This document shows positions 6,463 through 60,797 of a stretch of DNA of 64,000 bases, piece after piece. The stretch lies in contig CDROCS010000253.1 of assembly GCA_977020255.1 (NCBI GenBank), forward strand, positions 496,001 through 560,000, given 5' to 3'. The notes under the pieces were generated by a model that worked only from the letters and a program-made list of their open reading frames with translations, ran no database searches and was not told the DNA's origin. Origin of the DNA: Obrimoposthia wandeli. Its lineage: Eukaryota. A program made the position numbers and the translations under genes. Numbering within the stretch: position 1 is the first letter of the stretch; the number at the start of each line of letters is the position of its first letter.

Positions 6463-6728
6463 TATACCAAGCGGACTAATTTATTGATCACTTAGCGAGA
6501 ATTAAAAGGTTTAGAGGCAAGGCATTGATTGAAGAGAATAGTTATTCTATTGTCAAAATCAATAACGCCGCATGTAATCCTTTTAAACTCGTCCTTCGGA
6601 AGCTCCTTAGCAAACTGATAACATCACCAAATGAATAAAATATAGACTAACTATGTTTAAATCATTTTGCTTGTTTTAAGCTCGCTAATGTAGTTCTAAG
6701 CTGACTAATAAATTAATCCGTTTGGTAT
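6463..6728. mobile_element. ERIC-like MITE, copy A (type-3 termini, about 266 bp)
   Basis: TIRs ATACCAAGCGGACTAATTTATT / AATAAATTAATCCGTTTGGTAT (22 bp, 2 mismatches). The core GGCAAGGCATTGATTGAAGAGAATAGTTATTC is shared with the copies at 22268, 35949 and 41599. Confidence 0.85.
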
Positions 6729-6884
6729 TATTAACAATAATATCTTAATAATTGCGAAGCAAGCATAATTTTTAATGATTCCGTCTATGATTAAGAGTAC
6801 TATAGCGCCTTTTTTTTACCCCTAGTTTTTAATGCTTAGTATTTGCCTTAATAAGCACTAAGCAATCGTTGGAGAAGTAAGTTT

Positions 6885-9812
6885 ATGCCATTTCAGGTAG
6901 GTCAGCGTTGGATCAGTGACAGTGAATCAGATCAAGGATTGGGTACAGTAACTGGCGTTGAAAATCGCTTTGTTAATATTATTTTCACAGCAACCGGTGA
7001 AGCCCGTAAATACGCTAAAGAAAATGCGCCATTAACGCGTGTTATCTTTAATAAAGATGACCTTATCCCTAGCCACGAAGGCTGGTCGTTAAAAGTAACT
7101 TCACATAGTGAAGCTCATGGCATAATCAACTACGAAGGCATACGCCAAGATACCAATGAGCAAGTCATCCTAAAAGAAGTGATGATAGACCACTTTATTA
7201 AATTCAATAAACCTCACGACCGCTTACTCAATAGCCAAGTTGACCGTTTAGACTGGTTTCGCTTGCGAAAAGATTGCTTACAACATCAATATCAACAACA
7301 GCAATCTGATTTAACCGGTTTGACCGGTGGTCGAGTTAGCTTAATACCACACCAACTGTATATTGCCGATGAAGTCGGTAATCGCTTTGCTCCTAGAGTT
7401 TTACTGGCCGATGAAGTTGGCTTAGGAAAAACCATTGAAGCGGGTTTAATCATCCATCAGCAATTGGTCACTGGCCGTGCAAAAAGAATTCTGATCATAG
7501 TACCCGAGTCTTTAATGCATCAATGGTTGGTTGAAATGCTACGCCGTTTTAACCTTAACTTTAGTATTTTTGATAATGAGCGTTGTGTTGAAACTAGCCA
7601 AGATAATTATATTGATGGCAAAAAAGCTAATCCCTTTAGTTCAGAACAATTAGTACTGGTTAACCTAGGTTTTATCACTAATAATCCACAATGGTATGAC
7701 GCATTACTTAGTGAAGATTGGGATTTAATGGTGGTCGATGAGGCGCACCATCTAAACTGGCAACAAGATAAACCCAGTATTGAATACCAGTGTATTGAAC
7801 AACTCGCGCAAGTCATCCCAGGTGTTTTATTATTAACTGCCACACCAGATCAATTAGGTCATGAAAGTCACTTTGCCCGTTTACGTTTGCTTGATGCTGA
7901 CCGTTTTTATGATTATCAAAAATTCACTGAAGAAGAATCCCATTATAGCGAAGTTGCTGATGCTGCCAATGCGTTAGTCGAAGGTAACAAACTTTCTAGT
8001 GAGCAAGAAAAGACACTCTCTGATTTATTAAAAGAAACTGATATCAGCGTGCAACTGACTGAGTTAAATCAAACAGACAGCGAGCAATCAGTAAAAGTAC
8101 GCCAAGGTTTATTAAAACAGTTACTCGACAGACACGGTACTGGTCGTATCTTGTTTAGAAACTCTCGCAATACTATTAAAGGCTTCCCTGCCCGTCAAGT
8201 AGTACCCGCTGCGTTAGCTATGCCTGAGCAATATCAAGAAAACATTAATGAGTTTATGCTCAGTGACTGCCCTGAAGCCTTAGCGAAATCAAAGCAGGCT
8301 AAATATATTTTCACCCCAGAAATGCTGCACGGCTTAAATCAACAAAATGACACTTGGACTGACTTTGATCCTAGAGTTGATTATTTAATTGATCTATTAC
8401 AGTCACTTAAAAAAGAAAAAGTATTAGTCATTTGTGCAAATGCTCAAACAGCGATTGATTTAGAAGCTGTTCTTCGTATTAAAGAAGGTATTCGCAGCGC
8501 TGTTTTCCATGAGGGTCTATCAATATTTGAACGCGATAAGGCTGCCGCTTATTTTGCCCAAGACGAAGATAGTGCTCAACTATTGCTGTGTTCTGAGATT
8601 GGTAGTGAAGGACGTAATTTTCAATTTGCTCATCATCTAGTGCTTTTTGATTTACCCAGCAACCCTGATTTATTAGAGCAACGCATTGGTCGCTTAGACA
8701 GAATTGGCCAAACAGAGATAATCCGTATTCATGTGCCTTACTTTGAAGATTCGGCCCAGCAGTTATTATTTGATTGGTACCAACAAGGTATGCAAGCATT
8801 TGAGCATACCTGTATTACCGGTCGAGTGGTTTTTGAAACTTTTGGTGAACAACTACTCGCATTAGCGTTAACTTGCCAACAGCAATCAGCTGAAGCAGAG
8901 TCGCTGATTAGTAGCAGTTGGCAGAAACATTTAACCATTAAAGCTGAATTAGAATCTGGCCGAGATAAGTTATTAGAGCTGAACTCATCTGGCCAAGGAC
9001 GTGCCCATGAATTAGTTGAGAAAATACAGCAAGCTGATAATGACATAGGCTTACCTCAATTTATGTTTCAGGCACTCGATGTATTCGGTGTGCAGCAAGA
9101 TGATAAAGCGGATAATGCCATCGCCTTGAATCAAAGCGAGCATATGCTTAATAGTAACTTCCCTTGTTTACCAGAAGACGGCACCACTGTTACTTTTGAT
9201 AGAGAGACAGCCTTAGTTAATGAGAATTATCAATTATTAACTTGGGATCATCCTATGGTTCGTGGTGTGATGGATTTGGTCCTCAGCGATGAAATTGGTA
9301 ATGCCAGTATTGGTTTATTAAAAAATGAAGCACTACCGGTAGGCACCTTCTTCCTTGAATGCTTATTTACCGTTGAAGCTACCGCCCCTGCTCATTTACA
9401 ACTAGGTCGTTACTTACCTACTACGCCAATTCGTATCTTGGTAGACAAAAATGGCAATAATTTAGCAGACAAAGTCAGTGAAAAAGTACTTGATAAACAA
9501 TTGTCACCTGTTAAAAAACAAATGGCCTTACAACTTATCAAAGCACTTAAGACACAAATAGCGCCTTTGGTTGCTAAAGCAGAAGCACATGGCGCGCAGC
9601 ATATTATTGCAATCCAAGAGAAGTCGTTAACAGCAATGCAAAATAAACTCTCGTTAGAGCAACAAAGATTAACAGCCTTAAAAGCTATTAACCCAAGTGT
9701 GCGCCAAGAAGAGATTGATTTTATTAGTCAGCAACAAGATGAATTAAGCCACTATATTGATAAAGCGCAATTGACCTTTGAAGCAATTCGCATGATAGTG
9801 GTTACGCACTAA
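6885..9812 (+). CDS. rapA: RNA polymerase-associated SWI2/SNF2 ATPase RapA (HepA)
   Basis: MPFQVGQRWISDSE N-terminus; LLADEVGLGKTIEAG, VDEAHH and EQRIGRLDRIGQ motifs; 975 aa. Confidence 0.97.
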   Translation: MPFQVGQRWISDSESDQGLGTVTGVENRFVNIIFTATGEARKYAKENAPLTRVIFNKDDLIPSHEGWSLKVTSHSEAHGIINYEGIRQDTNEQVILKEVMIDHFIKFNKPHDRLLNSQVDRLDWFRLRKDCLQHQYQQQQSDLTGLTGGRVSLIPHQLYIADEVGNRFAPRVLLADEVGLGKTIEAGLIIHQQLVTGRAKRILIIVPESLMHQWLVEMLRRFNLNFSIFDNERCVETSQDNYIDGKKANPFSSEQLVLVNLGFITNNPQWYDALLSEDWDLMVVDEAHHLNWQQDKPSIEYQCIEQLAQVIPGVLLLTATPDQLGHESHFARLRLLDADRFYDYQKFTEEESHYSEVADAANALVEGNKLSSEQEKTLSDLLKETDISVQLTELNQTDSEQSVKVRQGLLKQLLDRHGTGRILFRNSRNTIKGFPARQVVPAALAMPEQYQENINEFMLSDCPEALAKSKQAKYIFTPEMLHGLNQQNDTWTDFDPRVDYLIDLLQSLKKEKVLVICANAQTAIDLEAVLRIKEGIRSAVFHEGLSIFERDKAAAYFAQDEDSAQLLLCSEIGSEGRNFQFAHHLVLFDLPSNPDLLEQRIGRLDRIGQTEIIRIHVPYFEDSAQQLLFDWYQQGMQAFEHTCITGRVVFETFGEQLLALALTCQQQSAEAESLISSSWQKHLTIKAELESGRDKLLELNSSGQGRAHELVEKIQQADNDIGLPQFMFQALDVFGVQQDDKADNAIALNQSEHMLNSNFPCLPEDGTTVTFDRETALVNENYQLLTWDHPMVRGVMDLVLSDEIGNASIGLLKNEALPVGTFFLECLFTVEATAPAHLQLGRYLPTTPIRILVDKNGNNLADKVSEKVLDKQLSPVKKQMALQLIKALKTQIAPLVAKAEAHGAQHIIAIQEKSLTAMQNKLSLEQQRLTALKAINPSVRQEEIDFISQQQDELSHYIDKAQLTFEAIRMIVVTH

Positions 9813-9864
9813 CTAGTTACGCCTTAACTGATTGGGCTAAGTTCAAATGAGCATAGCCCTAATC

Positions 9865-9900
9865 ATACCAATCAGATTAATTAATGGATCTGATTGGTAT
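9865..9900. repeat. Perfect 13-bp inverted repeat with MITE-like ends
   Basis: ATACCAATCAGAT-TAATTAATGG-ATCTGATTGGTAT. The ends match the ATACCAA...TTGGTAT termini of copies A and B. Confidence 0.6.
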
Positions 9901-9919
9901 CACTAATCCTGAGAAAATA

Positions 9920-10603
9920 ATGAGCGCAAACCCTGATTTTATCTATTTACCTCCGATGTCACCTTACCTTGATATTATTTACCAAGATGATGATATTGTT
10001 GTCTTAAATAAAGCGAGTGGTATTCTAAGTGTGCCTGGTCGCTTACCTGAACATCAAGATTGTTTACAAAACCGTGTGCAAAGAATTTTACCTACTGCCA
10101 CTATCGTGCATAGGTTAGATATGGCCACTTCAGGCATCATGATTATGGCGTTAAACAAACCCGCACATGTCGCTATTAGCCGTCAATTTGAGCAAAGAAA
10201 AACTCAAAAGAGCTATATCGCCCGTGTATGGGGTTTAGTCGAACTGAGTGAAGGCAGTGTGGATTTACCCTTGATATCTGACTGGCCCAATAGACCAAAG
10301 CAAAAAGTTGACCGTGAAAACGGTAAAAAATCATTAACGCATTATCGCGTGCTTAGCCATAATGATTCAACAGATGAACAAGCTAGTACTCTGCTTGAAC
10401 TGACACCTATTACCGGACGTTCTCATCAACTTAGAGTCCATATGTTAGCCTTAGGTCATCCCATATTAGGGGATAGACTTTATGCGCCTAAAGAAGCATT
10501 AACTATGAGAAACAGATTACAGTTACATGCTTTGAATTTACGTTTATTTCATCCAAGTACTGAACAAGCAATTACTTTTAATACACAGTGCCCTTTCAGT
10601 TAA
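9920..10603 (+). CDS. rluA: Pseudouridine synthase RluA
   Basis: NKASGILSVPG, HRLDMATSG (catalytic Asp), TGRSHQLRVH; downstream of rapA. The likely start is MSANP (9920); the longer ORF starts inside the hairpin at 9884. Confidence 0.93.
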   Translation: MSANPDFIYLPPMSPYLDIIYQDDDIVVLNKASGILSVPGRLPEHQDCLQNRVQRILPTATIVHRLDMATSGIMIMALNKPAHVAISRQFEQRKTQKSYIARVWGLVELSEGSVDLPLISDWPNRPKQKVDRENGKKSLTHYRVLSHNDSTDEQASTLLELTPITGRSHQLRVHMLALGHPILGDRLYAPKEALTMRNRLQLHALNLRLFHPSTEQAITFNTQCPFS

Positions 10604-10667
10604 TTCTTTTTATGTCGCGCTTTTTATTCTATGGTCGATATAGAATTATTGGTAAAGGGTAATACCC

Positions 10668-11654
10668 ATGAGGTTTAAGAGCTTTAAGGAAAAACAGTTG
10701 CATACGACAAGTCCACATAACGTAAGTCGAAATACTATTAGCCAAAGGAAAGGCAGCTCAATATTATTAGTTTTATTTCTCTGTATGCTTACTTTTATTT
10801 GCTCCCCCCTGACCTTTGCAGAAGAACAGAAAACTGACACGTCAGCAGAGAATACTCAAAAGACTGCGAATAAAGTTACTCCAATAAAAAAACCTATCGA
10901 GTTAACTAAACAGTACAAAGAAGACCTTAAACATTACCTAGCCGCTGAGCAAGTAAAGCCATTGTTAGCAGGACCTGATGATTATTTGACTCTAGTAAAA
11001 AGGTACACAAGTGCTAACAGTAAAGGGGTAGTTATTTTATTACCTGAATGGCAGCAAGGCGCCACTAACCCAAAGGCAATTAATTACTTACGTAATGCCC
11101 TCCCGGCTAAAGGTTGGAGCACCATCGCAATACAACCGAATAATAAGCCGGAAAATTATCCCTCAACAGCAATCACGGTAGCGGAACAAAAAAAAGAAAA
11201 TCAATTAGTCTTAGAGGATTATAAAAGTAAACTAAAAAGCATGTTCAATGCCGTCATGAACACAGCAAGGGAGTATCCAGGTATAGTACTGGTTATTGCT
11301 CAAGGGAATAATGCCGCCTTACTCGTAGATTTATACAGCCAAGACGGTAGCCAACAGCCCAATGCACTCATTATGCTAAGTAGCTATCGACAGAGTAATC
11401 ATGCACTCATTAATACTGTAAATGAAAACTTTGCACGTCAACTCGCTTTTACTGAGCTACCTGTACTCGACCTTTATCTTAAACACGATAACCCACTCGT
11501 GCTAGCTAAGGCCGCACAAAGAAAGGCATTTTCAAAGCAAGAGATGAAAGTATATTACCGTCAACGTCAGCTAAACAATACCGTTACTGGTTATTATCCA
11601 GAGGAAGAATTATTACGCCAAATTAATAGCTGGCTAAAAGCTATTGGTTGGTAA
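10668..11654 (+). CDS. Exported DUF3530-like protein, alpha/beta-hydrolase-like fold
   Basis: Hydrophobic signal-like segment ending TFA-EE, then GVVILLP, GWSTIAIQP, LVIAQGNNA, LIMLSSY and LPVLDLY strand/helix pattern. The true start is uncertain and may be downstream. Confidence 0.65.
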   Translation: MRFKSFKEKQLHTTSPHNVSRNTISQRKGSSILLVLFLCMLTFICSPLTFAEEQKTDTSAENTQKTANKVTPIKKPIELTKQYKEDLKHYLAAEQVKPLLAGPDDYLTLVKRYTSANSKGVVILLPEWQQGATNPKAINYLRNALPAKGWSTIAIQPNNKPENYPSTAITVAEQKKENQLVLEDYKSKLKSMFNAVMNTAREYPGIVLVIAQGNNAALLVDLYSQDGSQQPNALIMLSSYRQSNHALINTVNENFARQLAFTELPVLDLYLKHDNPLVLAKAAQRKAFSKQEMKVYYRQRQLNNTVTGYYPEEELLRQINSWLKAIGW

Positions 11655-11696
11655 CGTTAATCCCCTTTTAAAAGTGGTAAAGCGATTCAACGTCAA

Positions 11697-11735
11697 ATGG
11701 TTTGATGGTTTGATGGTTTGATGGTTTGATGGTTT
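11697..11735. repeat. Tandem octamer repeat (ATGGTTTG)x4.9
   Basis: Four perfect units plus 7 of 8 bases, between convergent genes. Confidence 0.95.
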
Positions 11736-11793
11736 CTAATCATAATCAGAGTACAAAAGATAACAGTAATGCACTCTGATTTTTTATTTTAGG

Positions 11794-12621
11794 CTATTTC
11801 TTCTGTTTCTCAATTAAATCATATGCCGCTTGAATTTCTTGCGTTTTTTCTTTAGCACTTTCCATCATTTCTGGTGGTAAGCCCTTAGCCATTAACTTAT
11901 CAGGGTGATGCTGCAACATTAATTTTTTATAAGCCTTTTTAATCACCGGCATTGATGAGTTTTTATCAACCCCTAAGACTTTAAAAGCATTTTCTAGCTG
12001 CTGACCACTCGTAGGAATACTTCCTGAACCTTGTTGACGATACCCCCTACCACTCTGTTGTTGGTGGAAGTTAGCTCCGGCAATAATCATTTCCAGTAAT
12101 TTATCAAGTTCTCCCGCCGAATAACCTAACAATTTGGCTATGGTGTGCAAAACAGATCGCTCTGCGTCATCTAATTCGCCATCACTAAAGGCAACTTGAA
12201 CTTGGATTTCTAAAAACATTAACAACAAATCATGTCTATTACCCATCAAACGTTTAAATTTAACCAGACGGTCTTTGAGTGGGAAGCCTGTTGATTTACC
12301 CTCACGAAAAGCATCTTGTGCTTGTTCGCGTAATTCACTGCTCAGCCCAAGCTTGTCCATATAAGCACTAGCAAAAAGAATTTCATGGTTAGTCACTTTT
12401 CCTTTAGCTTTGGCAACATGTCCCATCACCGAAAAAGTGGTATAGAAAAAAGCAGCTTGCCGAGCAATGTCATCTTCTTTACCGCCAGCTATGCCATTGA
12501 AATTAAAACCACGGCCGCGATCAAACATATGACCAAGCCAAAGACCCAGCAAAGCACCAAAGAAGTTTTTAGTGAGCATAAAGCCAAATAAAAAACCTAA
12601 AATTTTACCCCAAATATGCAT
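11794..12621 (-). CDS. djlA: DnaJ-like membrane co-chaperone DjlA
   Basis: MHIWGKILG N-terminal TM, TerB-like middle, C-terminal J domain with HPDKL. Start set at the second Met. Confidence 0.96.
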   Translation of the reverse strand: MHIWGKILGFLFGFMLTKNFFGALLGLWLGHMFDRGRGFNFNGIAGGKEDDIARQAAFFYTTFSVMGHVAKAKGKVTNHEILFASAYMDKLGLSSELREQAQDAFREGKSTGFPLKDRLVKFKRLMGNRHDLLLMFLEIQVQVAFSDGELDDAERSVLHTIAKLLGYSAGELDKLLEMIIAGANFHQQQSGRGYRQQGSGSIPTSGQQLENAFKVLGVDKNSSMPVIKKAYKKLMLQHHPDKLMAKGLPPEMMESAKEKTQEIQAAYDLIEKQKK

Positions 12622-12649
12622 ATTTCTTAGCATTCCTTAAAATAATATT

Positions 12650-12720
12650 TATACCCGTTACCATTCAAAGTGAAATAGCTCACCAACTTTGAAACATCCA
12701 TATTGATTGGTAACGGCTAT
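12650..12720. repeat. 71-bp internally deleted ERIC-like element (type-2 termini)
   Basis: TATACCCGTTACCATTCAAAGTG...TGAAACATCCATATTGATTGGTAACGGCTAT is the reverse complement of the two ends of element 48765-49028. Confidence 0.85.
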
Positions 12721-12850
12721 TGTCTACAGGTGAACTATCCCATAAGAAGTTAGTCCAACTGAAAAAATTGCTATATCATAAAGCAATTAGCCGTTAAAAT
12801 ACTTGATTCATAGCTATTTTATCAGTACTTTCATCATTTCCGGACAATAA

Positions 12851-15163: not shown

Positions 15164-15234
15164 TTTACACTACTTACTTTGCAATAATCAGTACCATACG
15201 CAATATTAAGAATATAAAACAAGATATAAAAAAT

Positions 15235-17516: not shown

Positions 17517-17534
17517 TTTAACAAAGAAGCAGTT

Positions 17535-18440: not shown

Positions 18441-18443
18441 TTT

Positions 18444-19307: not shown

Positions 19308-19387
19308 TCAAAATTATTTATTGTACAAAAAAGCAAGTCCCCATAGAGGATGACTTTTTGCTGAGTATAATAAAAGCGCCTAAACAT

Positions 19388-19414: not shown

Positions 19415-19484
19415 AAGCTTAGCTTGATATATAAAAACTAATTAACGTATAACTAGGCAATAGCCTACCAATTGGGTGGATTGA

Positions 19485-21503
19485 ATGAATTTAACTGTAG
19501 CTGTAAAAATAATTGGTGGCTTTGCCATTATCTCAACTTTACTGATAGTAATTAGCATCATATCGTTATCTAATTTAAACACCATCAGCGAGTCGACTCA
19601 GCAGCAGAGCACTTTAGCGATTCCAACACTCAAAGCCAGTAATAAGCTTGCCCTTGAGATCAGTCAAATGAGCAATGTGACCTTAAAAGGTTATTATCAA
19701 ACAGATCTTGCTCTATTAGCTGGTAATTTAACAAATTATAAAAATATAGAAACAGTGTTCGCGCAACAATTAGCAGAATTAAAGCAAACTGTCGCTTTGG
19801 AGCCAGATTTACTGACCAACTTGACTCAAGTAGAGCAACTCTATGCAAACTTTCAGCATGCTAATATTGGATTATTTAATAATCATAAAGTGAGTATCGA
19901 ACAAAAACAGTTGTTAACTGAAAAAATTAATAGTTTAGAAGAAAAAGCAGATAACACTATTATGCTACTGTTAGATTTGGCTGATCATGAACTCGCTGGT
20001 ACTAAACTGCAACGTGCAATCAATTTAAGTGACTACTTAGAAACACAATTGAACTCGATTGTCTCTTCTGCTTTAGAGTATCGTGATATCTTGAACGAAA
20101 GCACAGCACAATTTTTCGGCAGTGAGCTTACTAGTAGTATTAGTGATGCGAAACACTCAGTTGATAATATTATCTTGGAATTAAATAACCATGAACTTGA
20201 AGGCATCTCTGAGCAAGTTACCTTAGCATTCAACGAAATACAGAGCCTCTTATCACAAGAAAATGGCATCCTAGCCCACAAAGTAAAGCAATTAAAAGCG
20301 AACCAACAAACCTATCTCCTGCTCTTAGAGGAAGAGAAGGTGGCCAAACAAGTTAATAAAATATTAGAGAAGCAAATTGAGCTAGCGAACCAAACCACCA
20401 TTAGAGCTAGTCAACTGGTTGAGGATTCAGTAAGTAGTGGTAGTACCCAAACCACCATTATTATGCTCATATCCATTGCTGTTGCGTTAATAATCGCTCG
20501 AATTACGCTGATTGGTATTACTCGTCCATTAACACGTGTTAATGAAATGCTCAGTATCGTCGCTTCTGGTGACCTTTCGATGAAGCTTGATGAAAGTGGT
20601 AACGATGAATTCGCTCAATTATCAAAAAATTGTAATTTATTAATTGATAGTTTACGTAATCTAATTGAAAGCATTGTTAATCGTTCCGCACAATTAGCTG
20701 CTGCTGCAGAACAAACCTCAGCCGTGACTGCACAAAGTACCACTGCAATTGAAGAACAACGTAATCAAGTAGAACAAGCAGCCTCGGCAACAACCGAAAT
20801 GAGCAGTACCTCACAAAGTGTGCTTTCAAGTGCCAACGATGCCTTAAGTGAAATTAAACATGCTGATGAAGAAGCGGAACGTGTTAAAGGCATTTCAGCT
20901 AGAAACCGTCAGACCATTGAAATGCTTGCTAATGAAGTAGAATCAGCCGCTCAAGTTATCAACCAATTACAACTGGACAGTGCCTCAATAGGCGGAATAT
21001 TAGATGTAATTCGTGGTATTGCTGAACAAACTAACTTACTAGCACTAAATGCAGCCATTGAAGCAGCACGAGCTGGTGAGCAAGGACGAGGTTTTGCTGT
21101 CGTTGCAGATGAGGTACGTACCTTAGCCAGTAGAACACAAGAATCAACGTCTGAAATTCAAACGATGATAGAAGCACTACAAACAGGTGCAGGTAAAGCG
21201 GTAACAGTTATGGATGCAGGTAAGTCTAAAGCCAGTGATTGTGTAAATCAAAGTGAGGAAGCTGACCAAGCACTTGAAATTATTACCCTCGCAGTACACG
21301 AGGCATTTGATCGCAGTTCACAAATTGCAACCGCTGCTGAAGAGCAAAGTGTTGTTGCCCATGAAATCAGTGAAAATCTTGAGTCTATTGTGACTATTGC
21401 TGAGCAAACTACCGCTGGCTCACAACAAACAGCAGCATCAAGTAGTGAAGTTGCTCGTTTAGCTGAAGAGTTACAACAATCAGTGCAAGAATTTAAATTA
21501 TAA
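19485..21503 (+). CDS. Methyl-accepting chemotaxis protein
   Basis: Two TMs, large helical periplasmic domain, HAMP, signalling hairpin [37 protein letters not shown]. Confidence 0.96.
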
Positions 21504-22261: not shown

Positions 22262-22267
22262 TATTTA

Positions 22268-22530
22268 ATACCAAGTCCATTAAGTTAGTTCCCACTCAGA
22301 GCTTGCCAGCGGTTTGAGAACAAATAGAATTTTTTGCATATAGTCACTCTATATGAAAGAAATTCTATGCGGTTATCGAGTCGCTGGAAAGCTCCCGAAG
22401 GGCGAGTTTAAAAGGCTTACATGCTGCGTTATTGATTTTGATAAGGGAAAAACCATTATCTACAATCAATGCCTTGCCTCTAAGCCTTTTAACTCTCGCT
22501 GAGTGGGAAGAAACTTATTGGAATTGGTAT
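22268..22530. mobile_element. ERIC-like MITE, copy B (type-3 termini, 263 bp)
   Basis: 32-bp TIRs ATACCAAGTCCATTAAGTTAGTTCCCACTCAG / CTGAGTGGGAAGAAACTTATTGGAATTGGTAT (4 mismatches). The 3' half matches the reverse complement of 6490-6604. Confidence 0.88.
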
Positions 22531-22584
22531 AAGTAATATTACTGACAAAGCTATAAATACATTACACTTTGGTCATTTAGATAA

Positions 22585-23859
<1,275 letters not shown>

Positions 23860-35948: not shown

Positions 35949-36296
35949 TATACCCGCTCCACTTGAAGATGCTCATTTCAGGAAACCTGAGCGAATCATA
36001 ATCAAGGCACATTTTTTGTTAAGGGTTATTCCCTTAAAAACAAATGTAACGACGAATATGATTTGCTCCGTTTTCCCCAAAGGGCTGGTTTATAAAAGGC
36101 TCAGAGCTCCCCGTAGGGCTGGTTTAGAAACTCTTTCTGCTGCGTTATTGATTTCGACAATAACGCTACATGGATGTAGCTTATTAGAGAATGCAGGAGC
36201 ATATTCTCCTGAATAACTATTCTCTTCAATCAATGCCTTGCCTAAAGACGTTTCTAATTCCAGCTGAATCCTGCATCTTCAAGTGGCTTGGGTATA
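35949..36296. mobile_element. ERIC-like MITE, copy C (type-1 termini, 348 bp, composite)
   Basis: TIRs TATACCCGCTCCACTTGAAGATGC / GCATCTTCAAGTGGCTTGGGTATA. Two inverted core modules, a duplicated CCCCnnAGGGCTGGTTTA motif and nested small hairpins. Confidence 0.9.
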
Positions 36297-41598: not shown

Positions 41599-41775
41599 TA
41601 TACCCAAGCCACTTGAAGCTGTGTGTTTCAGGGGTCCCCATAGGGCTGGTTTAGAAACGCTTTATGCTACGTTATTAATTTTGAGAAGGGAGTAACCATT
41701 CTCTTCAATCAATGCCTTGCCTAAAGGCGTTTCTAATTACAGCTGAAACCTGTATCTTCATATGGTTTGGGTATA
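41599..41775. mobile_element. ERIC-like MITE, copy D (type-1 termini, 177 bp, single module)
   Basis: TATACCCAAGCCACTTGAAG...CTTCATATGGTTTGGGTATA; overlaps the last codons of the nitrilase gene. Confidence 0.9.
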
Positions 41776-42606
41776 TGTATTCAGCGGCGAGTTCAAAGGC
41801 ATGCTTTGACGTATGCGTGTTAATTCTTCAGGGTGATAGTCGATTGAAATATAACCTTCACCTGTTTCAATACTCTGTTCAATTTCGCCCCAAGGATTAA
41901 TAATCATTGAGTGACCCCAAGTTTCGCGACCATTTTCATGAATGCCCTCTTGACCTGCAGCAATTATATAGACTTGGTTTTCAATAGCTCTTGCTTGCAA
42001 TAATGCTTGCCAGTGCGCTTTTCCAGTTACTCTTGTAAAAGCACTGGGTACAGTAATAATGTCAGCGCCAGCTTTAGATAGTTGCTGAAACAAATTAGGA
42101 AAGCGTAAATCGAAACAAACCGATAGACCAATGTTAGCGAACTCGGCATCAACAACACTTATTTCTTTACCTGCTTGGGTATAACGAGATTCACAATAAC
42201 TTTTAGTATTATCACTCACATTAACATCAAATAAATGAATTTTATCGTATTGTCCTATTAACTCACCACAAGGATTAAAAACACAACTGCTATTAGTAAA
42301 CTTTGTAGCAGACTCCGTTAAAATAGGGATAGTACCGGCCACTAAGAAAACTTTAAATTTTTTGGCAAGTGCTCCAAGCGCTAAACAAAGGTCACTACCT
42401 TTTGAAGAGTTTAGTGCCGATTTTTTTGCCAAATCCAATTGTTCACTGTCTTTACTACCAAAATACAAACAACACTCTGGTAATACTACTAAGTGCTGAG
42501 TATCATCTTGGCTAGCAGTAATTTTAGTCAGTAACTCAGCTATCGTAGCAAGGTTCGTGGCGACATTAGCCGCTGAGGATAACTGTATCGCACTCAATTT
42601 AACCAT
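41758..42606 (-). CDS. Carbon-nitrogen hydrolase (Nit1/deaminated glutathione amidase family)
   Basis: Glu-Lys-Cys triad LPEC, YDKIHLFD, VCFDLRF; RAIENQ, TWGHSM. Confidence 0.93.
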   Translation of the reverse strand: MVKLSAIQLSSAANVATNLATIAELLTKITASQDDTQHLVVLPECCLYFGSKDSEQLDLAKKSALNSSKGSDLCLALGALAKKFKVFLVAGTIPILTESATKFTNSSCVFNPCGELIGQYDKIHLFDVNVSDNTKSYCESRYTQAGKEISVVDAEFANIGLSVCFDLRFPNLFQQLSKAGADIITVPSAFTRVTGKAHWQALLQARAIENQVYIIAAGQEGIHENGRETWGHSMIINPWGEIEQSIETGEGYISIDYHPEELTRIRQSMPLNSPLNTYTQTI

Positions 42607-48066: not shown

Positions 48067-48113
48067 AAATATCCTTTATTTCAAACAGTAGTTCAAAAAA
48101 TCAGTTGAAAAAA

Positions 48114-48743: not shown

Positions 48744-48764
48744 AAAAATTATTCACTATTGGTA

Positions 48765-49028
48765 TATACCCGTTGCCAATCAAGATACATGTTTCAGAGT
48801 GCTTGAGCAATTTCAATTCAAGGCGCTGTGATGAAACAATGGTTATTCCATTATAAATCACAGCAACGATGAAGTGATTTTTCTCAAGCGCTTCTGCGAT
48901 GGGTTTAAAGTGACTTTATTCTTCGTCAAATAATCAAAGTATAGAGTGACTATGCTTAAATTATTTTCCTTGCCTAAAGTCATTTTAATTCCCACTGAAA
49001 TCCTGCACTTTGAATGGTAACGGGTATA
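48765..49028. mobile_element. ERIC-like MITE, copy E (type-2 termini, 264 bp)
   Basis: TIRs TATACCCGTTGCCAATCAAG / CTTTGAATGGTAACGGGTATA; two inverted CAAGG-stem-loop modules. Confidence 0.9.
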
Positions 49029-49082
49029 GCTAGTCCTTGAGAAAGTGTGGAGTGATTCAATGCATGCTCATTTAACGCATTG

Positions 49083-50458: not shown

Positions 50459-50656
50459 ATAAGTTACAAACTTGAGGGGTAAGGTTTTGATACTATAAAG
50501 AGAATAAAGTTCAACAATATAGCAGCATAACTTTCAATCAATAATTTATTCACAGGAATTTCGCTCAAGTACAAGACAATAGCACGGAGTTGACGTTAGT
50601 CAATGAGTACTATTAACGCCGTAACTGAGTTAAATGACACAGAAGAAAAATTGATT

Positions 50657-51724
<1,068 letters not shown>

Positions 51725-52001
51725 CTAATTAAGTAAACGCTGTTAAATGCGAATGGCAGATCGGATAATCATACCTTAGTCTTAAGCTAATGTGTTGCTT
51801 TTTTTAAAAGAAACAGTAAAGAAAAAGTAAAGAAATATACGGCAGCAGTTTTCTATAAAAATTTGCTACAAGGAGGTGAGAATATAGCGCCTTACTTGAG
51901 GAGAAAGTGATAAAATATCCCTTTCTTATCTTTCATTCTCCCCCTCCTCTTTCGAATACTTATATGACTTTCTTTCAAATGCAGGAATTTAGTAAACTCC
52001 C

Positions 52002-56093: not shown

Positions 56094-56587
56094 TACAAAC
56101 TCCGCGCTTCAACTTGAAGAGTACGGCTGCTATTTACCATATTTTTACTTCCTGCTTCCATTGTGCCACTGCCACATTTACCCGTACTGGTTAACCGGTA
56201 ATATTTCGGGCCACCAGAAGGGTCTGTTGGTTTGGGATAATAATTATCACAAGTTGTCGTAGCTTTACAGTCGTAAAGCCCTGGTATATCGGTTTTAAAA
56301 TCATAGGAGGTCGCGTTACAGACACCTGTAGCGCCATTGAGAGGAAATAGTAATTGTAATTCTGCTTGCATAGCAGAGTTGGCTGCCATATAAGCACGAG
56401 TACCTAACACCTCTTGTGATACTGTTTCACTGCTTGTGGAAATCATGCGCATTAAAACACTGCCTAACAAGGTTAATATAATAATGACAAACAAGGCCAA
56501 AATTAAAGAACTGCCTCGCTGCTTAGAGATGCGAGGTAAGTGGAGCAGTGCTTTATTTTCAGGTAATGGCTGATAATGAATAAACAT
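56093..56587 (-). CDS. mshP: MSHA minor pilin MshP (PilX-like)
   Basis: QRG-SSLILALFVIIIL prepilin-like start, GTRAYMAANSA. Confidence 0.85.
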   Translation of the reverse strand: MFIHYQPLPENKALLHLPRISKQRGSSLILALFVIIILTLLGSVLMRMISTSSETVSQEVLGTRAYMAANSAMQAELQLLFPLNGATGVCNATSYDFKTDIPGLYDCKATTTCDNYYPKPTDPSGGPKYYRLTSTGKCGSGTMEAGSKNMVNSSRTLQVEARSL

Positions 56588-56798
56588 ATTGGCTTTAAGG
56601 CTACAATTTATATGGCAGAAGTTAGTACAAATGTAACGCTAAGCACTTATTTTTGCAATATAAAGCATAACCCCCCCCGTAATTCGGAGCAGTCAGTTAA
56701 GACTAAATGACGGTTGAACAACTGAGGTTTTCCTTACGCTGGCTTCTCTATCAGTATAATTTATAAAGTTAAACAGGTTTTCTCAAAAAATTAATTAC

Positions 56799-57677
56799 CT
56801 AGGGGACATTATTTATATGTACTTCATGGTCAAAAACATAATTTTCATCATCGTTAGTAAATTGCAAATGAATTTGCACAACTGCATTTCGTTTCAGTGA
56901 CGGGGGCTCATAATTAAAAGGGGGATTATCACCGAAATTATTGACCAAGTAACCAGCCATATAATTCCCATTTAAAATGGGATGGCTTTGTAGGCCTCCG
57001 GTAATATCTTCTTTATAACGCATGATAAAACCAGCAGAAGCACAATAACTAACCTGCTCTTTTGTTATGTATAACCGCTGAGTAGGAGAGTCCTCATCAA
57101 CAAGTACATCTTGCGTATTAGATATATTTATTTTCCAAGGCGTTACAGTTGCATCAACGCTCCCTACACTAAATATCTTACCGCTGTCACTGGTGAAATC
57201 GTCATAGATATCTTCATTTTTCAATGGGTAAACAGTGATTAAATCTTTGCAATTTCCACCAGTACCAGCAACAGGACATTGATATGGATCACCCTCACTA
57301 TTGTTAAAGGGAATGACCGAAAAGACTTTAGTGGCTGGCTTTGGTGCAACAGGAATATCGGTATACACGGTGCTCGCAATAATCGGCGTAAATTGAATGC
57401 ATTGTGATGTGTTATCAACTGATAAAATACGAATACTATTGGGTACTGCATTACGTAACTCTCGACTTAGACGTTCAATGACAAAGCGAGCATTACCTAC
57501 AAGTTCGTCGCGATTACTCGCATTTAAGTAAGTTTGTGTTGATAAGGTGATAAAGCCGCTTATGCCAACGGCCATTATGCCCATAATGATAATGACTAAT
57601 ACGAGCTCAATTAGGGTGAAACCTTGGCTGGCTTTTCTATTTATACCGCTAAATTTATTTTTAAAGTAGCCCATCAA
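56799..57677 (-). CDS. mshO: MSHA minor pilin MshO
   Basis: QG-FTLIELVLVI, ERLSRELRNAVPNSIR, C-terminal HEVHINNVP. Confidence 0.9.
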   Translation of the reverse strand: MMGYFKNKFSGINRKASQGFTLIELVLVIIIMGIMAVGISGFITLSTQTYLNASNRDELVGNARFVIERLSRELRNAVPNSIRILSVDNTSQCIQFTPIIASTVYTDIPVAPKPATKVFSVIPFNNSEGDPYQCPVAGTGGNCKDLITVYPLKNEDIYDDFTSDSGKIFSVGSVDATVTPWKINISNTQDVLVDEDSPTQRLYITKEQVSYCASAGFIMRYKEDITGGLQSHPILNGNYMAGYLVNNFGDNPPFNYEPPSLKRNAVVQIHLQFTNDDENYVFDHEVHINNVP

Positions 57678-58228
57678 AAATTAGCCTTATAACTGCTAAA
57701 CTCTATCGCTGTGCCTAACGGTGTAGTAACCGTGACAGTAATACGTTTCGCTAACATATTATCTGATAATTGTAACTCATCCCCTGCGTAGCTCACTTTA
57801 ACAAGAATTTCAAACTGCCTATAACCTTCATCAATATTTTGATCGAGCGCATTTTTCTTCTCGCTATAGTTATTAAAATCATCGACATCATTGTAGTGCT
57901 TACGCTCAGTTTCACCGGGATCAGAGCTGAGATTTAAAGTGCAAGGTAGTGCTCCCGCTTCACCACAACGAAGTAATCCACCTGACATATCTGAATTGTG
58001 ATCAAAAGCACGGCTAGTTATATCGTTCATCAAGCTCTGTGCCAGTTCTGAAGCTTTAATTTGTAGTACATTATCAGCACTTTTTTCTTCTGCTGGCACA
58101 ATTAAGGTACTGACTATGGATAATGAAAGCGTTAGCACAATGATGCCAACAATAAGCTCAATTAAAGTAAAGCCTTGTTGACGCTTAAATTGAGCTTTAA
58201 TTAGGCGATTAAGGGAGATCGAAGACAT
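57674..58228 (-). CDS. mshD: MSHA minor pilin MshD
   Basis: QQG-FTLIELIVGI, YNDVDDFN, C-terminal YKANF. Confidence 0.9.
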   Translation of the reverse strand: MSSISLNRLIKAQFKRQQGFTLIELIVGIIVLTLSLSIVSTLIVPAEEKSADNVLQIKASELAQSLMNDITSRAFDHNSDMSGGLLRCGEAGALPCTLNLSSDPGETERKHYNDVDDFNNYSEKKNALDQNIDEGYRQFEILVKVSYAGDELQLSDNMLAKRITVTVTTPLGTAIEFSSYKANF

Positions 58229-58748
58229 GAATATAACCCTCTTCTTCAATAGAAATGATTAAAGGCTTCTCGCCGGGTCGGATGACATTAATTTCACAGC
58301 CACCAGCACAATCGTAGATGGGACGTCCCATCCAGTCAAAACCTACTTTTACATGATCAGTAAGAATCGCACCACCTTCTTTAACAATATTAAAGGTAAT
58401 TTGATAGCGACTATCAACTAGATGCCCTGTGGCATCAGGAATCCATTTTTCGATGGGGGTAGGAGTAGGGAAAACAATATTATCGCAATTCTTTCTATCA
58501 GGTACACCGTAGCGAGTATAATCATCAGCACCCTCAAAAACAATTTGATGGCAATAATCATCTGTAGTATCTGTTTGCTGCATTGCGCGTTGTTGTGTTA
58601 ACCGTAAAGCTGAAATAAGTTGTGCTCTGTGTGTGTGTGCTTCGTAGCCAGTAGTACCATCAAATTTAGGTGCTACTGACACCGCTATAATAGCGATCAA
58701 AATTATCACTACAATTAATTCTATTAAAGAAAATCCCTTATTATTCAT
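58209..58748 (-). CDS. mshC: MSHA minor pilin MshC
   Basis: KG-FSLIELIVVI, LRLTQQRAM, C-terminal IEEEGYIH. Confidence 0.85.
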   Translation of the reverse strand: MNNKGFSLIELIVVIILIAIIAVSVAPKFDGTTGYEAHTHRAQLISALRLTQQRAMQQTDTTDDYCHQIVFEGADDYTRYGVPDRKNCDNIVFPTPTPIEKWIPDATGHLVDSRYQITFNIVKEGGAILTDHVKVGFDWMGRPIYDCAGGCEINVIRPGEKPLIISIEEEGYIHVFDLP

Positions 58749-58886
58749 TTGTTTTCTCTATTGTGGCTGACAAAAATTTCAAGAAAAACGCCCCAATTAT
58801 CACCTACATAAATATAGTTATTATCTTACAACACTTTAGCGATAGATTGTATACTCAACCATCGCATTTACCACAACGAGTTCATT

Positions 58887-60620
58887 TTGTCTTTATTACC
58901 CTACTTTAAATTATTTCTTGTTCTGTATTTTCTTATTGGCATGCATATTATTTTAGATACACCTGGCGGTGTTGGCTTGTATTATTCCTATAATGTTATT
59001 GCTTGGATAATTACCGCTATTCTTATTGCGCTTGGTTTGTGGCAAGTCACTTTGAATAAAAAAATATACTATAGCAAGATGTTACTTTGGTTAGCTTTAG
59101 GGTGTACTTTTTTAGTCATACCCGCTTTTTATCCCTTTGATTTTACTGACCATGCCATTCCTCGAATTTTAGCCTTAGTGGGCGGCTTTCTTTTTCTATT
59201 TTCACTCTATCAATTTAACCTTTCAAAAATAGAAGCATTACAATTACTCACTCTAATTCTCATCGCAGTGGTTATTGAAGCATGTTTTGGTTTGGTGCAG
59301 TTTTTTATATTCGAAGCAGGTGACTGGGGCGGATATATTGTGGGTAGCAGCAGACCACATGGTGTTTTCATTCAGCCTAACGTTATGGCTAGTTTTATGG
59401 CAACTGGTTTAGCCATTGCATTATTCCTCTCCGTTAAAACCAAGATTATTCAAAATAAACTATGCTTTAATTGCCTAATAGCTTTCAGCCTATTTGTTAC
59501 TAGCTTTTTACTCATATTACTGCAGTCTCGTACCGGTTTTGTCGGGGCATTCGCTGTAATTTTGCTTATATCACCTTATTTATATCAAAAGAACAAAAAG
59601 CAATTATTCACTAACCTAGTTATTATCACAATAGCAGTACTCAGTGCGATAATAAGCCTTGAGCAGTCAGCAACGCCCATTCGTGGCCAGCAAGTGTATG
59701 AAAATGTTGGATCTCGTGATGCTTTATTTATTGTCAGTGTTGATATGATTAAAGAAAAACCATTACTTGGCTACGGCTATGGTGGTTTTGAGCGTAGTTT
59801 CATCGATCACTTCAACCAATATGCAGTAAAAAATCCTGAGATAGGTAATACTATTACCGGATTATCTCATCCACATAATGAGGTACTTTTCTGGGTAGTT
59901 GAAGGAGGTATTATTGCCTTATTGGCTTTTATCTTTTTCACTATTGGTTATATTTGTACTTGGCGTAAAATACCGCTGAGTAAGGGACTAGCATTACTTG
60001 GTTTAGTATTACCTATACTATTACATAGCCAATTAGAATTTCCTTTTTATAGCTCCGTCAGTCATTGGCTAGTGTTTCTCATTATGCTTTGGTTACTAGA
60101 TCATTATTCCTTAAATAATGATGCCCTAGCTGAAGATAAAGATCATAACTTTATCAACTGTCCTCAGACTTTCTTATTACGCTTTTTTGCAATATTAATC
60201 CCAAGTATTTTTATCCCTTTTTTAGTAACCACTTTACACACCGCAAACATTCTTGTTGAACACGAAAAAAATCCTAAAAAATCATTAGCACGATTCAGTG
60301 ACATTATTAACCCAATAGCATGGCAGAGTCGCTTAGATGCGGCTGTTTATGCACATATTCTTATTTCTGGCTTACACAGTCAGGATATAGATAAACTAGA
60401 GAGCTACCTAACATGGGTACTTAAGCGCATTAAGCATAAACCTAGAGAGGACCTTTACGTTCATGCTTTATTAGTACTAAAGACACTGCAGAGGAACGAG
60501 CAATATCAACTATTATTACTTGAAGCAAAACAAACTTATCCGCAAAAAAGTAACTGGCAAGATAGTATTTTACAACCCGATAACATTACCACTTTAGATG
60601 GAATGAAGAGTAGTAATTAA
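58887..60620 (+). CDS. O-antigen ligase/PglL-type O-oligosaccharyltransferase (Wzy_C plus C-terminal extension)
   Basis: About 12 TM segments; GVFIQPNVMASF, LQSRTG, PLLGYGYGGF, HPHNEVLFWVVEGG, LHSQLEFPFY; long soluble C-terminal domain. TTG start is uncertain. Confidence 0.85.
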   Translation: MSLLPYFKLFLVLYFLIGMHIILDTPGGVGLYYSYNVIAWIITAILIALGLWQVTLNKKIYYSKMLLWLALGCTFLVIPAFYPFDFTDHAIPRILALVGGFLFLFSLYQFNLSKIEALQLLTLILIAVVIEACFGLVQFFIFEAGDWGGYIVGSSRPHGVFIQPNVMASFMATGLAIALFLSVKTKIIQNKLCFNCLIAFSLFVTSFLLILLQSRTGFVGAFAVILLISPYLYQKNKKQLFTNLVIITIAVLSAIISLEQSATPIRGQQVYENVGSRDALFIVSVDMIKEKPLLGYGYGGFERSFIDHFNQYAVKNPEIGNTITGLSHPHNEVLFWVVEGGIIALLAFIFFTIGYICTWRKIPLSKGLALLGLVLPILLHSQLEFPFYSSVSHWLVFLIMLWLLDHYSLNNDALAEDKDHNFINCPQTFLLRFFAILIPSIFIPFLVTTLHTANILVEHEKNPKKSLARFSDIINPIAWQSRLDAAVYAHILISGLHSQDIDKLESYLTWVLKRIKHKPREDLYVHALLVLKTLQRNEQYQLLLLEAKQTYPQKSNWQDSILQPDNITTLDGMKSSN

Positions 60621-60797
60621 GCCATTTGAAGGTGCAGGATTCAGCTGGAATTATAAACGCCTTTAAGTAAGACATTGATTGAAAATAATGGTTATTCAGG
60701 AGCACATTCTCCTGAATGACCCTTAATAAAAAAATGCGCCTTGATTATGAATTACTCAGACTTCCTGAAACGAGCATCTTCAAGTGGAGCGGGTATA
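60619..60797. mobile_element. ERIC-like MITE, copy G (type-1 termini, left end eroded)
   Basis: Matches the reverse complement of copy C at both ends (AAGCCATTTGAAGGTGCAGGATTCAGCTGGAATT... and ...GAGCATCTTCAAGTGGAGCGGGTATA) with a large internal deletion. Confidence 0.88.

Follow-up and report, generated by a model that had tools for sequence, protein, structure and literature searches.

The short repeats scattered through the 64-kb window (the whole stretch of DNA analyzed here) are very probably nonautonomous IS630-type MITEs of a Colwellia-like chromosome, whose shared core goes back to rare chimeras and is now exchanged only occasionally. The two unlike ends of types 1 and 2 are those of a CCC-type insertion sequence of the IS630 family, in the group to which classic ERIC also belongs, and the type-3 ends are those of another IS630 lineage that is deeply divergent from the first. 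ERIC-type repeats are in wide use for strain typing, and both their mover and the role of their folded interior are poorly understood. In the family described here, the MITE ends pair clearly with two separate IS630 lineages, and mobilization is therefore testable with cloned transposases. The family further provides a natural experiment, in which one 50-nt hairpin keeps its shape and position across four genera while joined to three or more unrelated kinds of ends, and it brings to light a tiny insert that is strictly specific for a loop.

Nine elements and their chromosomal setting

The window is part of a 4.68-Mb Colwellia-like bacterial contig within a whole assembly of 1.35 Gb. The original prediction had placed nine elements in it, and all of these are present, either exactly where proposed or a few bases off. 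Searches of the 64 kb by nhmmer with profiles of the family recovered eight of the nine and nothing further; the remaining one, at 9865, was read directly from the sequence because its 34 bp are too short for nhmmer. The string TATACCC occurs 13 times in the window against 5.8 expected, a count reached by 0 of 100 shuffles. The features are as follows.

4762..4821, + strand: E1, type-2 mini of ~60 bp in which two ends, TATACACGTT… and …AACGGGTA, are fused; right-hand duplication decayed to TC
6462..6730, + strand: E2, full type-3 element, proper 6465-6727 (TACCAA…TTGGTA); TTA duplication at 6462-6464 and 6728-6730; hairpins at 6518-6567 (+) and 6621-6679 (-)
9863..9902, no strand: E8, type-3 mini palindrome, proper 9866-9899 (34 bp); TCA duplication
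12650..12721, + strand: E9, type-2 mini of ~70 bp with both ends and without a hairpin
22266..22532, - strand: E3, full type-3 element of subtype b, proper 22269-22529; TAA duplication; hairpins at 22422-22479 (-) and 22328-22374 (+)
35949..36296, - strand: E4, type-1 element of 348 bp, the 267-bp form having been enlarged by a 48-nt two-hairpin insert and by a 34-nt duplication of the central hairpin; ends of different subtype (GCTCC versus AAGCC)
36163..36210, - strand: 48-nt two-hairpin submodule within E4, directly 3' of the GTTATTC loop heptamer, which on the + strand is GAATAAC (36211-36217)
41599..41775, - strand: E5, one-arm type-1b element of 177 bp; hairpin at 41665-41724; its end holds the last codons and stop of the ORF at 41758..42606 (-)
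48765..49028, - strand: E6, full type-2 element of 264 bp; TA duplication; hairpins at 48812-48873 (+) and 48919-48977 (-); 98% identical to another chromosomal copy
60612..60797, + strand: E7, type-1 element with a loop-to-loop deletion and a 16-nt remnant of the 48-nt insert; degenerate left end overlapping the stop of the ORF at 58887..60620

Some of the copies differ from their first description. Those at 4762, 9865, and 12650 are real but are merely end-only minis of 34 to 72 bp, the first of which starts with TATACAC and not TATACCC, and the copy at 60619 is likewise real but has a degenerate left end. Elements come in three forms: full elements with two arms and a length of about 265 bp, elements with a single arm (about 177 bp), and elements reduced to their ends (34 to 72 bp). 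Sizes span 34 to 370 bp. They have no coding capacity, and the sole ORF of at least 80 codons within any of them is a mechanical 94-aa TTG ORF across E4. The predicted junction GAATTAnAA…TTTAG(A)GGCAAGG is seen in every full copy.

Further copies were sampled by BLAST with the whole window elements as queries, with at most 40 scored hits per query. At first look, the type-1 query gave 215 candidates and the type-3 query gave 176; there are ~30 full type-2 copies. Because the copies were picked with whole window elements, the sample is biased against recombinants, and both these counts and the scarcity of hybrids reported below describe BLAST-selected copies rather than a census of the contiguous chromosome. 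Literature searches on MITEs of Colwellia or Shewanella, and on IS630 elements with a TNA duplication, returned nothing relevant.

Ends, target duplications, and transposases

The ends of type-1 and type-2 elements have the form TA/TACCC…GGGTA/TA and match those of a 1.1-kb CCC-type insertion sequence of the IS630 family. Type-1 ends agree with the right end of this insertion sequence at 28 to 30 of 34 nt, against 9 to 17 of 34 for the other lineage, and the two unlike ends of type 1 correspond to its left and right ends; type-2 ends agree with its ends at 24 to 25 of 34 nt. Type-3 elements instead have TACCAA…TTGGTA ends and a 3-bp TNA duplication, and their agreement with the TACCAA-type insertion sequence is moderate (17 to 23 of 34 nt, versus 9 to 19 of 34 for the wrong lineage). 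TA is found on both sides of 27 of 30 type-1 copies and 24 of 26 type-2 copies (51 of 56 together), and identical TNA flanks occur in 13 of 18 type-3 copies; TNA is also present at four of five TACCAA-type insertion sequences. When relatives were searched for empty sites, as had been proposed, precise ones were found: E6 is represented by one TA in genome G091, and the same genome, genome G047, and a contig from an ice metagenome each have one TTA in place of E2. For E1, E3, E8, and E9, the intergenic DNA of the relatives is too diverged for exact junctions, and one of the loci holds a masked run of N. The elements combine the copied ends, the TA duplication with empty sites (TNA in type 3), and the lack of coding capacity expected of an IS630-family MITE. 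As a separate observation, the alignment of the GAATTA linker with the subterminal region of the insertion sequences is too weak to call the linker a remnant of it.

The transposases of the CCC and TACCAA types are 23% identical to each other. Tc1-like copies from the host genome dominated the search for IS630 transposases in the whole assembly, and only GC content together with the ends exposed two bacterial copies, namely, a 5'-truncated CCC-type copy on contig C5398, which is other than the chromosome, and a frameshifted, 3'-truncated TACCAA-type copy in the chromosome. The view that the window lacks a transposase was borne out. In place of a mobilizing enzyme that had been called unknown, there are now two IS630-family lineages with matching ends, for neither of which was an intact transposase found in this chromosome; matching insertion sequences are present in other genomes, for example, those with a CCC-type transposase in Vibrio hannami and Psychromonas and one with a TACCAA-type transposase in genome G151. 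Movement would be by cut and paste in trans, with the transposases coming from elsewhere or from the past.

Among known systems, ERIC or IRU (ISfinder MITEEc1; MITEPlu5 of Photorhabdus) shares with these elements the outer TA/TACCC…GGGTA/TA with its TA duplication, the intergenic location, the two unlike ends mirroring the left and right ends of CCC-type IS630, and a single strand with a very stable fold. ERIC/MITEPlu5 has been linked to CCC-type IS630 (PMC6267812). The original prediction's description of ERIC as a 127-bp TATACCC…GGGTATA repeat is right for 30 canonical copies in Pectobacterium polonicum, a genome that also has the CCC-type insertion-sequence group. The first 24 nt of the type-1 end equal the Pectobacterium ERIC end at 18 of 24 positions, and the likeness is confined to approximately the first 24 to 34 nt of each end (21 of 34), with unrelated interiors. 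TATACCC…GGGTATA ends with a TA duplication are found in types 1 and 2 and not in type 3, and the family does not match the full-length ERIC consensus with its central inverted repeat, an ERIC-type center being absent from all three consensus sequences. The ERIC interior (…CACTCACCC…GTAAGCTC…GGGATTCAC…) is replaced here by two GTTATTC-loop arms, and the fold is Y shaped, whereas that of ERIC is a rod. The proposal of an ERIC-related family larger than ERIC is supported (265 versus 127 bp). RUP of Streptococcus pneumoniae (with IS630-Spn1) is similarly short and gene-less, with terminal inverted repeats copied from IS630 and a TA target, and RUP-like IS630-family MITEs are presumed to be mobilized in trans (PMC2229807). 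In contrast to RUP, at least two IS630 lineages have given ends to core-sharing MITEs here, and for one of these lineages the duplication is the 3-bp TNA instead of TA.

The 50-nt hairpin and its insert

The full 265-bp element is predicted to fold as a Y, consisting of an end stem and two arms (z-scores of -7.7 to -11.7), with each arm capped by a 50-nt hairpin of the form CAAGG–stem–GTTATTC loop–stem–AACG. Such modules had been recognized in the original prediction and are real, the exact pattern being matched 3 times in the window and never in shuffles, and a hairpin HMM giving ~11 hits. In each half, the hairpin begins at a fixed distance of 55 to 57 nt from the outer TA and is oriented toward the interior, and the GTTATTC loop is common to all six hairpin classes. 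Stem pairs are 93.6% canonical, versus 39 to 58% with the partners slid, and most stem positions show two to four pair types, with compensating substitutions and with shape, loop, and flanks kept. Palindromes can stay paired through DNA-level repair, without selection.

The hairpin is present in 10 of the 18 genomes tested, in company with TACCC, TACCAA, and GGG(T/C)CTGTT ends, and its carriers comprise Colwellia-group genomes, Psychromonas, Moritella, and Shewanella (four genera or genus-level groups). The GGG(T/C)CTGTT class, found in other genera, couples unrelated ends to the same hairpin at the same offset; a partner insertion sequence for these ends was not found among 10 IS630 loci in three genomes. 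None of the insertion-sequence loci contains this hairpin, and the exact hairpin pattern had no match in Pectobacterium, Klebsiella, or Symbiopectobacterium. Its recurrence across four genera, behind ends of three or more unrelated kinds, argues that the hairpin, rather than the ends, may be what makes the elements successful. As the likeliest option we propose, with low confidence, that the hairpin is a candidate cis-acting, DNA-level part of each transposon end. If it is true that the hairpin raises transposition or binds a host factor, this would explain the amplification of some bacterial MITEs to hundreds of copies.

The stability of the folds also raises the question of a function for the host at the RNA level, in which cotranscribed copies would alter mRNA stability or processing, as has been reported for ERIC in Yersinia, and the fold would be maintained for this reason. 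All nine window copies are intergenic, and the two genes flanking each of E1, E4, E5, E6, and E8 share a strand; for ERIC RNA, evidence of an orientation-dependent effect on transcript stability has been summarized by Delihas (PMC2229807). The twofold symmetry of the present elements, however, means that either orientation yields one GUUAUUC and one GAAUAAC loop, and the fixed offset, together with TA/TNA-type ends across genera, suggests an end-linked role. Moreover, Rfam gave no match at the gathering score for the whole window and none at an E value of ≤1 for E4, and scans for promoters and terminators at the elements gave no signal above chance. We regard a role as RNA as conceivable but rather unlikely.

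The 48-nt two-hairpin insert, of which there are some 60 copies, always lies exactly 3' of GTTATTC, in one orientation only and without a duplication. It is reminiscent of mini elements derived from IS200/IS605, with which it would share the fixed short site on its 5' side, the single orientation, the lack of duplication, and a hairpin near each end. It differs from them in being only 48 nt long and in having a heptamer in a hairpin loop as its target, and the chromosome yielded no IS200/IS605 transposase. One could conceive of the GTTATTC-loop hairpin as a structure, taken up repeatedly by IS630-type MITEs with unrelated ends, that is recognized by an enzyme whose substrate is single-stranded or extruded DNA, and of the 48-nt insert as hairpin-loop-targeting mobile DNA of an undescribed kind nested in these MITEs; we consider this unlikely and offer it as a speculation.

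Common cores and different ends

The prediction that several terminal types carry one common hairpin core is supported, and the affinities of the three types depend on the region compared. The ends group type 1 with type 2, and the core groups type 1 with type 3, with type-1 and type-3 cores being 83 to 90% identical versus 34 to 44% at the ends, so that a mosaic is apparent along the element. In a tree of the cores of 59 copies, there is one clade per terminal type (100/99 for type 2, 89/81 for type 1, and 90/85 for type 3), and type 2 is set apart from types 1 and 3. The proposed comparison of trees of termini and cores has a divided outcome: the two disagree between subfamilies, but within the genome the cores cluster by end type. 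Since the three subfamilies are unrooted, rate differences between regions, and not recombination, could account for part of the mosaic.

The same limitation of three unrooted groups, which alone cannot prove recombination, leaves room for vertical descent from one ancestral MITE, with a core under selection and with ends that diverged fast while coevolving with different transposases. The three consensus sequences are indeed collinear from end to end and nearly free of indels, the hairpin is clearly constrained, and ATACC is present in both end types. Nevertheless, the type-3 ends resemble those of an independent insertion-sequence lineage with a TNA duplication instead, and the third, unrelated end class in other genera has the same hairpin at the same offset. 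A Moritella element pairs CCC-type ends with a type-3 linker and center, and one sampled copy (L029), which joins a type-2 body to the end and linker of type 1, is a plain hybrid. These observations make purely vertical descent very unlikely.

At the opposite extreme, the original prediction envisaged free mix-and-match, with cores exchanged continuously between subfamilies like REPIN doublets moved by a RAYT/HUH enzyme. Exchange does occur, as is attested by the clear type-1/type-2 hybrid L029 and by E4 (the copy at 35949), a type-1a/type-1b hybrid with ends of two subtypes. Both inner-stem haplotypes, ATAG/CTAT and ATGG/CCCT, are found in type 1 and type 3, as are the 48-nt insert and even a 94-nt nested insert. 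However, these few hybrids stand against cores that are monophyletic for each terminal type across the 59 copies, and we hold exchange of a continuous and free kind to be highly improbable. REP/REPIN sequences resemble the elements in being short intergenic hairpins in inverted pairs, and the chromosome has a single RAYT gene (C253:2376573-2377037). This gene is flanked by unrelated GC-rich REPs, whose GGCGACT…AGTCGCC hairpins are unlike those of the MITEs, and REPINs lack the IS630-type terminal inverted repeats and TA/TNA duplications that the elements possess. A RAYT/REPIN system was rejected for the elements because the RAYT is accompanied by its own REPs.

Because the cores cluster by end type and hybrids are occasional, the combination of a common core with different ends points to rare old chimeras and not to free shuffling. 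The common core would have arisen through rare chimera formation, by recombination or by template switching during repair, and in particular, the core of a CCC-type MITE may have gained TACCAA ends. Successful chimeras would have been amplified afterwards, and present-day exchange is probably occasional and not free. At the level of individual hairpins, the left hairpin is, as predicted, nearly identical in the type-3 copy at 6464 and in type-1 copies. The ATAGTCACTCTATA loop of a type-3 and a type-2 copy, which had been taken for an exchanged module, proves in both to be one or two substitutions away from the common GTTATTC.

Elements of the window and their chromosome

The contig that carries the window, C253, is 4.68 Mb long with 38% G+C and belongs to a 1.35-Gb assembly of 6,912 contigs; its size and composition in this setting indicate a bacterial chromosome assembled together with the eukaryote. 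Two genomes, G047 and G091, both from a family that includes an uncultured Colwellia genome, are syntenic with the window at 73 to 83% nucleotide identity, consistent with a Colwellia-like bacterium. All nine repeat elements claimed for the window exist where they had been placed (E1 to E9 at 4762, 6462, 22266, 35949, 41599, 48765, 60612, 9863, and 12650, respectively), and all nine are intergenic. Profiles built from genome-wide copies recovered eight of them and no others in the window; E8, which is below profile-detectable length, was identified by direct reading of the sequence. The full-length form measures 264 to 267 bp. E5 (177 bp) is missing one arm, in E7 a deletion stretches between the two hairpin loops, E1, E8, and E9 are ends only (34 to 72 bp), and E4 (348 bp) holds two additional pieces. 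BLAST searches of the whole assembly with one element per type as the query yielded about 30 full copies of type 2 (74 to 98% identity) and, as first-look candidates, 215 for the type 1 query and 176 for the type 3 query, with the best 40 of each of the latter two sets scored. In all, 80 copies were retrieved with their flanks.

The ends of two of these miniature elements (MITEs) provide the final codons and the stop of adjacent open reading frames (ORFs):

41758..42606, - strand: ORF ending inside an end of E5 (overlap at window 41758-41775)
58887..60620, + strand: ORF ending inside an end of E7 (overlap at window 60610-60620)

Other features of the window include a run of same-strand short ORFs (158 to 292 aa) at 57586-62779, sharing repeated 100-nt stretches that are 65 to 73% identical (family D1 and others), which is probably a paralogous gene cluster. 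Positions 20998-21190, within ORF 19485..21503, have many matches in G047 and G091 (72 to 83% identity) and probably encode a domain conserved across a large family of paralogous genes. Directly downstream of ORF 10668..11654, a short tandem repeat (11698-11742) consists of three units of TGGTTTGA followed by TGGTTT.

Target duplications, empty sites, and IS630 relatives

In types 1 and 2, the sequence outside TATACCC…GGGTATA differs from copy to copy and is unrelated, so that the element proper is TACCC…GGGTA between duplicated TA; TA flanks both sides in 27 of 30 type 1 and 24 of 26 type 2 copies. Type 3 is instead TACCAA…TTGGTA flanked by a duplicated 3-bp TNA, with identical flanking triplets in 13 of 18 copies (TAA in six, TTA in six, and TCA in one) and, in the window, in E2 (TTA), E3 (TAA), and E8 (TCA). 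The TCA duplications cannot be read as duplications of TA.

Empty sites in relatives, a check suggested in the original prediction, were found precisely for two elements. The orthologous site of E6 in G091 reads …GTTA-TA-GCTAG…, versus …GGTA-TA[TACCC…GGGTA]TA-GCTAG… in the window, and the E2 site in both G091 and G047 is AAAGTATAGC-TTA-, with a single occurrence of the triplet. Further, an ice metagenome contig from run X5 joins window position 6440 to 6728 via TAAAGTATAGC, which is exactly the predicted empty site of E2 with one TTA. Contigs of a second run, X1, match the window without any difference, and one of them, at the same depth as its flanks, joins 6461 to 6728 without E2 and without one TTA. 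The X1 contigs suggest that E2 may be polymorphic for presence among near-identical cells, possibly within one strain.

A search of the assembly with the IS630 family model retrieved mostly Tc1-like host copies and two bacterial matches. The first, on contig C5398 (39% G+C), is a 340-codon open frame whose 5' end has been removed by another element and which terminates in …CTTGAAAGGCGACGGGTATA, a type 2-like end. Relatives of its protein are encoded by 1.1-kb insertion sequences of Psychromonas, a Methyloprofundus genome (in many copies), a Colwellia genome, Agaribacter, Vibrio hannami, Pectobacterium polonicum, a Klebsiella, Symbiopectobacterium, and others. These CCC-type insertion sequences have the left end TATACCCGTGATCATTGAAGATGCTTG… and the right end TATACCCnnnnnACTTCAAGATGCAGGTTT…, to which the two dissimilar ends of type 1 (…GATGCTCGTTTCAGG and …GATGCAGGATTCAGC) correspond, with up to 30 of 34 nt identical to the right end. 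The second match, at 3.878 Mb of C253, has a frameshift and a 3' truncation, and its left end, ACACCAATTCCATTAAG, is type 3-like. It is related to 1.11-kb insertion sequences that several genomes of the same family carry in multiple copies, with the ends ATACCAATCGGCAT… and a TTA or TAA duplication in four of five copies. Type 3 ends match these TACCAA-type insertion sequences at 17 to 23 of 34 nt, versus 9 to 19 of 34 for the CCC type, and the transposases of the two lineages are 23% identical across the catalytic half. No intact copy of either lineage was found in chromosome C253. Types 1 to 3 are probably a family mobilized by IS630 transposases.

Both bacterial copies (L082, G000:C5398:42914-46783; L091, C253:3876744-3881169) are broken by or adjoin other insertion sequence-like genes (ORF L082:624-1349 and ORFs starting at L091:2501). 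The lineage with TACCAA ends (L175-L186, relatives of the broken 3,878-kb copy) and its MITEs duplicate TNA (TTA, TAA, or TCA) rather than the usual TA; in the literature searched, we found no mention of an IS630 family lineage with a 3-bp TNA duplication.

The proposed ERIC affinity of the elements holds at the ends: ERIC and types 1 and 2 have ends of the same kind, with identity at 18 of the first 24 nt and at 21 of 34 nt overall, whereas the interior and size are not those of ERIC. Types 1 and 2 work like ERIC while lying outside the ERIC sequence family. In P. polonicum, a 127-bp TATACCC…GGGTATA element whose interior is the known one of ERIC is present in 30 copies, and the CCC-type insertion sequence is present in three. 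No partner was listed for ERIC by Delihas in 2008 (PMC2229807); its relative MITEPlu5 has been linked to "CCC-type" IS630 elements with TA duplication (Zamora-Lagos et al. 2018, PMC6267812). The suggested resemblance to REPINs was not borne out, as the single RAYT-type gene of the chromosome (154 aa, residues HLHWLF; L226, G000:C253:2375800-2377800) is flanked by different, GC-rich REP hairpins (GGCGACTnnAGTCGCCCCTACGG), which form with it a separate REP system.

A hairpin core behind different ends

The consensus sequences of the three types align end to end. Reading inward from either end, a ~35-nt inverted repeat is followed by a ~20-nt linker and then by the hairpin module, in which CAAGG leads into a stem and an inner stem, GTTATTC forms the loop, and the return arms run down to AACG; a small central hairpin divides the element into two halves. 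In each of the six end types, CAAGG begins at position 55 to 57, counted from the outer TA. Single strands of the three types adopt a common Y-shaped fold, in which the two ends pair as a basal stem bearing two ~100-nt arms (z-scores of -11.7, -10.5, and -7.7). In an alignment of 100 distinct hairpins from six classes, canonical pairs fill 93.6% of the cells of 11 stem pairs, versus 39 to 58% after a shift of the 3' partner by one to three columns; most stem positions show two to four canonical pair types each, and CAAGG, the loop, and AACG are conserved at frequencies of 0.7 to 1.0.

An exact pattern, CAAGG-N15-22-GTTATTC-N13-20-AACG, matched as follows:

Colwellia-group family, seven genomes: 3 to 17 matches each
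Psychromonas hadalis: 13 matches
A Moritella genome: 6 matches
Shewanella inventionis: 11 matches

It had no matches in V. hannami, Pectobacterium, Klebsiella, Symbiopectobacterium, Methyloprofundus, Agaribacter, Endonucleobacter, or a partial Psychromonas genome. The reversed control pattern had none in the ten positive genomes and, elsewhere, one in Pectobacterium and six in Symbiopectobacterium. The stem sequence is genome specific and fully compensated within the same 49- to 50-nt frame. Read from the flanks across genomes, the hairpin lies 54 to 57 nt from ends of three kinds:

TACCC ends: G138, Moritella, and P. hadalis
TACCAA ends: P. hadalis
Third class, TA|GGG(T/C)CTGTT…: Shewanella, G151, and G138

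MITEs of the third class (L250, L255, L260, and L275 in S. inventionis; L247-L267 in G151; L251 and L271 in G138) begin TA|GGG(T/C)CTGTT(G/T)ATCTTT…, with the hairpin at the same 55-nt offset; a partner insertion sequence or transposon for this class was looked for among 10 IS630 loci of three genomes and not found.

The hairpin is not contained in the insertion sequences themselves. This absence, the fixed distance from the ends, the twofold symmetry, and the recurrence behind different TA/TNA-type ends lead us to favor, tentatively, a function as DNA in conjunction with the transposon ends. The hairpin may also act as RNA, in the manner reported for Yersinia ERIC (PMC2229807).

Identity along the element is mosaic. 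The left hairpins of types 1 and 3 are 83 to 90% alike, the level seen among copies of one type, whereas their ends are 31 to 44% alike, versus 60 to 74% between the ends of types 1 and 2. Separate consideration of termini and cores thus reveals discordance at the level of types, with types 1 and 3 grouped (100/99) and type 2 separate (100/99) in the core tree and types 1 and 2 sharing ends. Yet within the core tree, each terminal type retains its own clade (type 1, 89/81; type 3, 90/85), indicating that exchange is not rampant. Of the mix-and-match organization first proposed, a shared core with a history unlike that of the ends therefore stands, and free shuffling does not. The loop ATAGTCACTCTATA, offered as evidence of exchange between type 3 and type 2 copies, is no such evidence: each instance lies just one or two substitutions from the common loop. 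Direct signs of occasional exchange are L029, a hybrid with a type 1 end and linker on a type 2 body; E4, with two ends of different subtypes; and an inner-stem haplotype differing by three substitutions (ATAG/CTAT versus ATGG/CCCT) that is found in types 1 and 3 alike. The subfamilies are probably stable old chimeras, neither freely shuffling parts nor REPIN-like.

A 266-bp Moritella element combines CCC-type ends, 75 to 83% like those of type 1, with the linker (AGCGAGAATT) and center (AAACTCGCCCTTCGGGAGC) of Colwellia type 3 (77 to 79% identical, versus 53 to 70% for type 1). Under the simplest account, type 3 would have arisen when a CCC-type MITE core took on TACCAA-type ends. More generally, the hairpin-bearing core may have joined new ends several times, with every successful combination later amplified.

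A nested 48-nt insert

A 48-nt piece, AGGAGAATATGCTCCT-GCATTCTCTAATAA-GCTACATCCATGTAGC-GT, has two small hairpins and is present in many copies (about 60 candidates in the genome), always immediately 3' of the loop heptamer GTTATTC, ahead of the stem's return arm, and in one orientation:

Window 36163-36210: insert in E4
L030-L040, L020, L021, L029, L068, L077, L078, and L241-L245: further loci

The junctions, AGTTATTC^TATTG and GGGTTATTC^CCTTAA, are clean, with no duplication. Among the best 40 matches scored with the insert and its flanks as the query, the adjoining heptamer is kept in all except a nested copy, even with different stems. No IS200/IS605 transposase was found in the chromosome. 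The insert occupies the left hairpin of types 1 and 3, that on the right in type 2 (where it is inverted), and the other hairpin of a further type 1 set, making four hairpin classes in all. Insertion was specific for both site and orientation and took place at least four separate times. One type 1 and one type 3 copy contain a 94-nt nested double insert.
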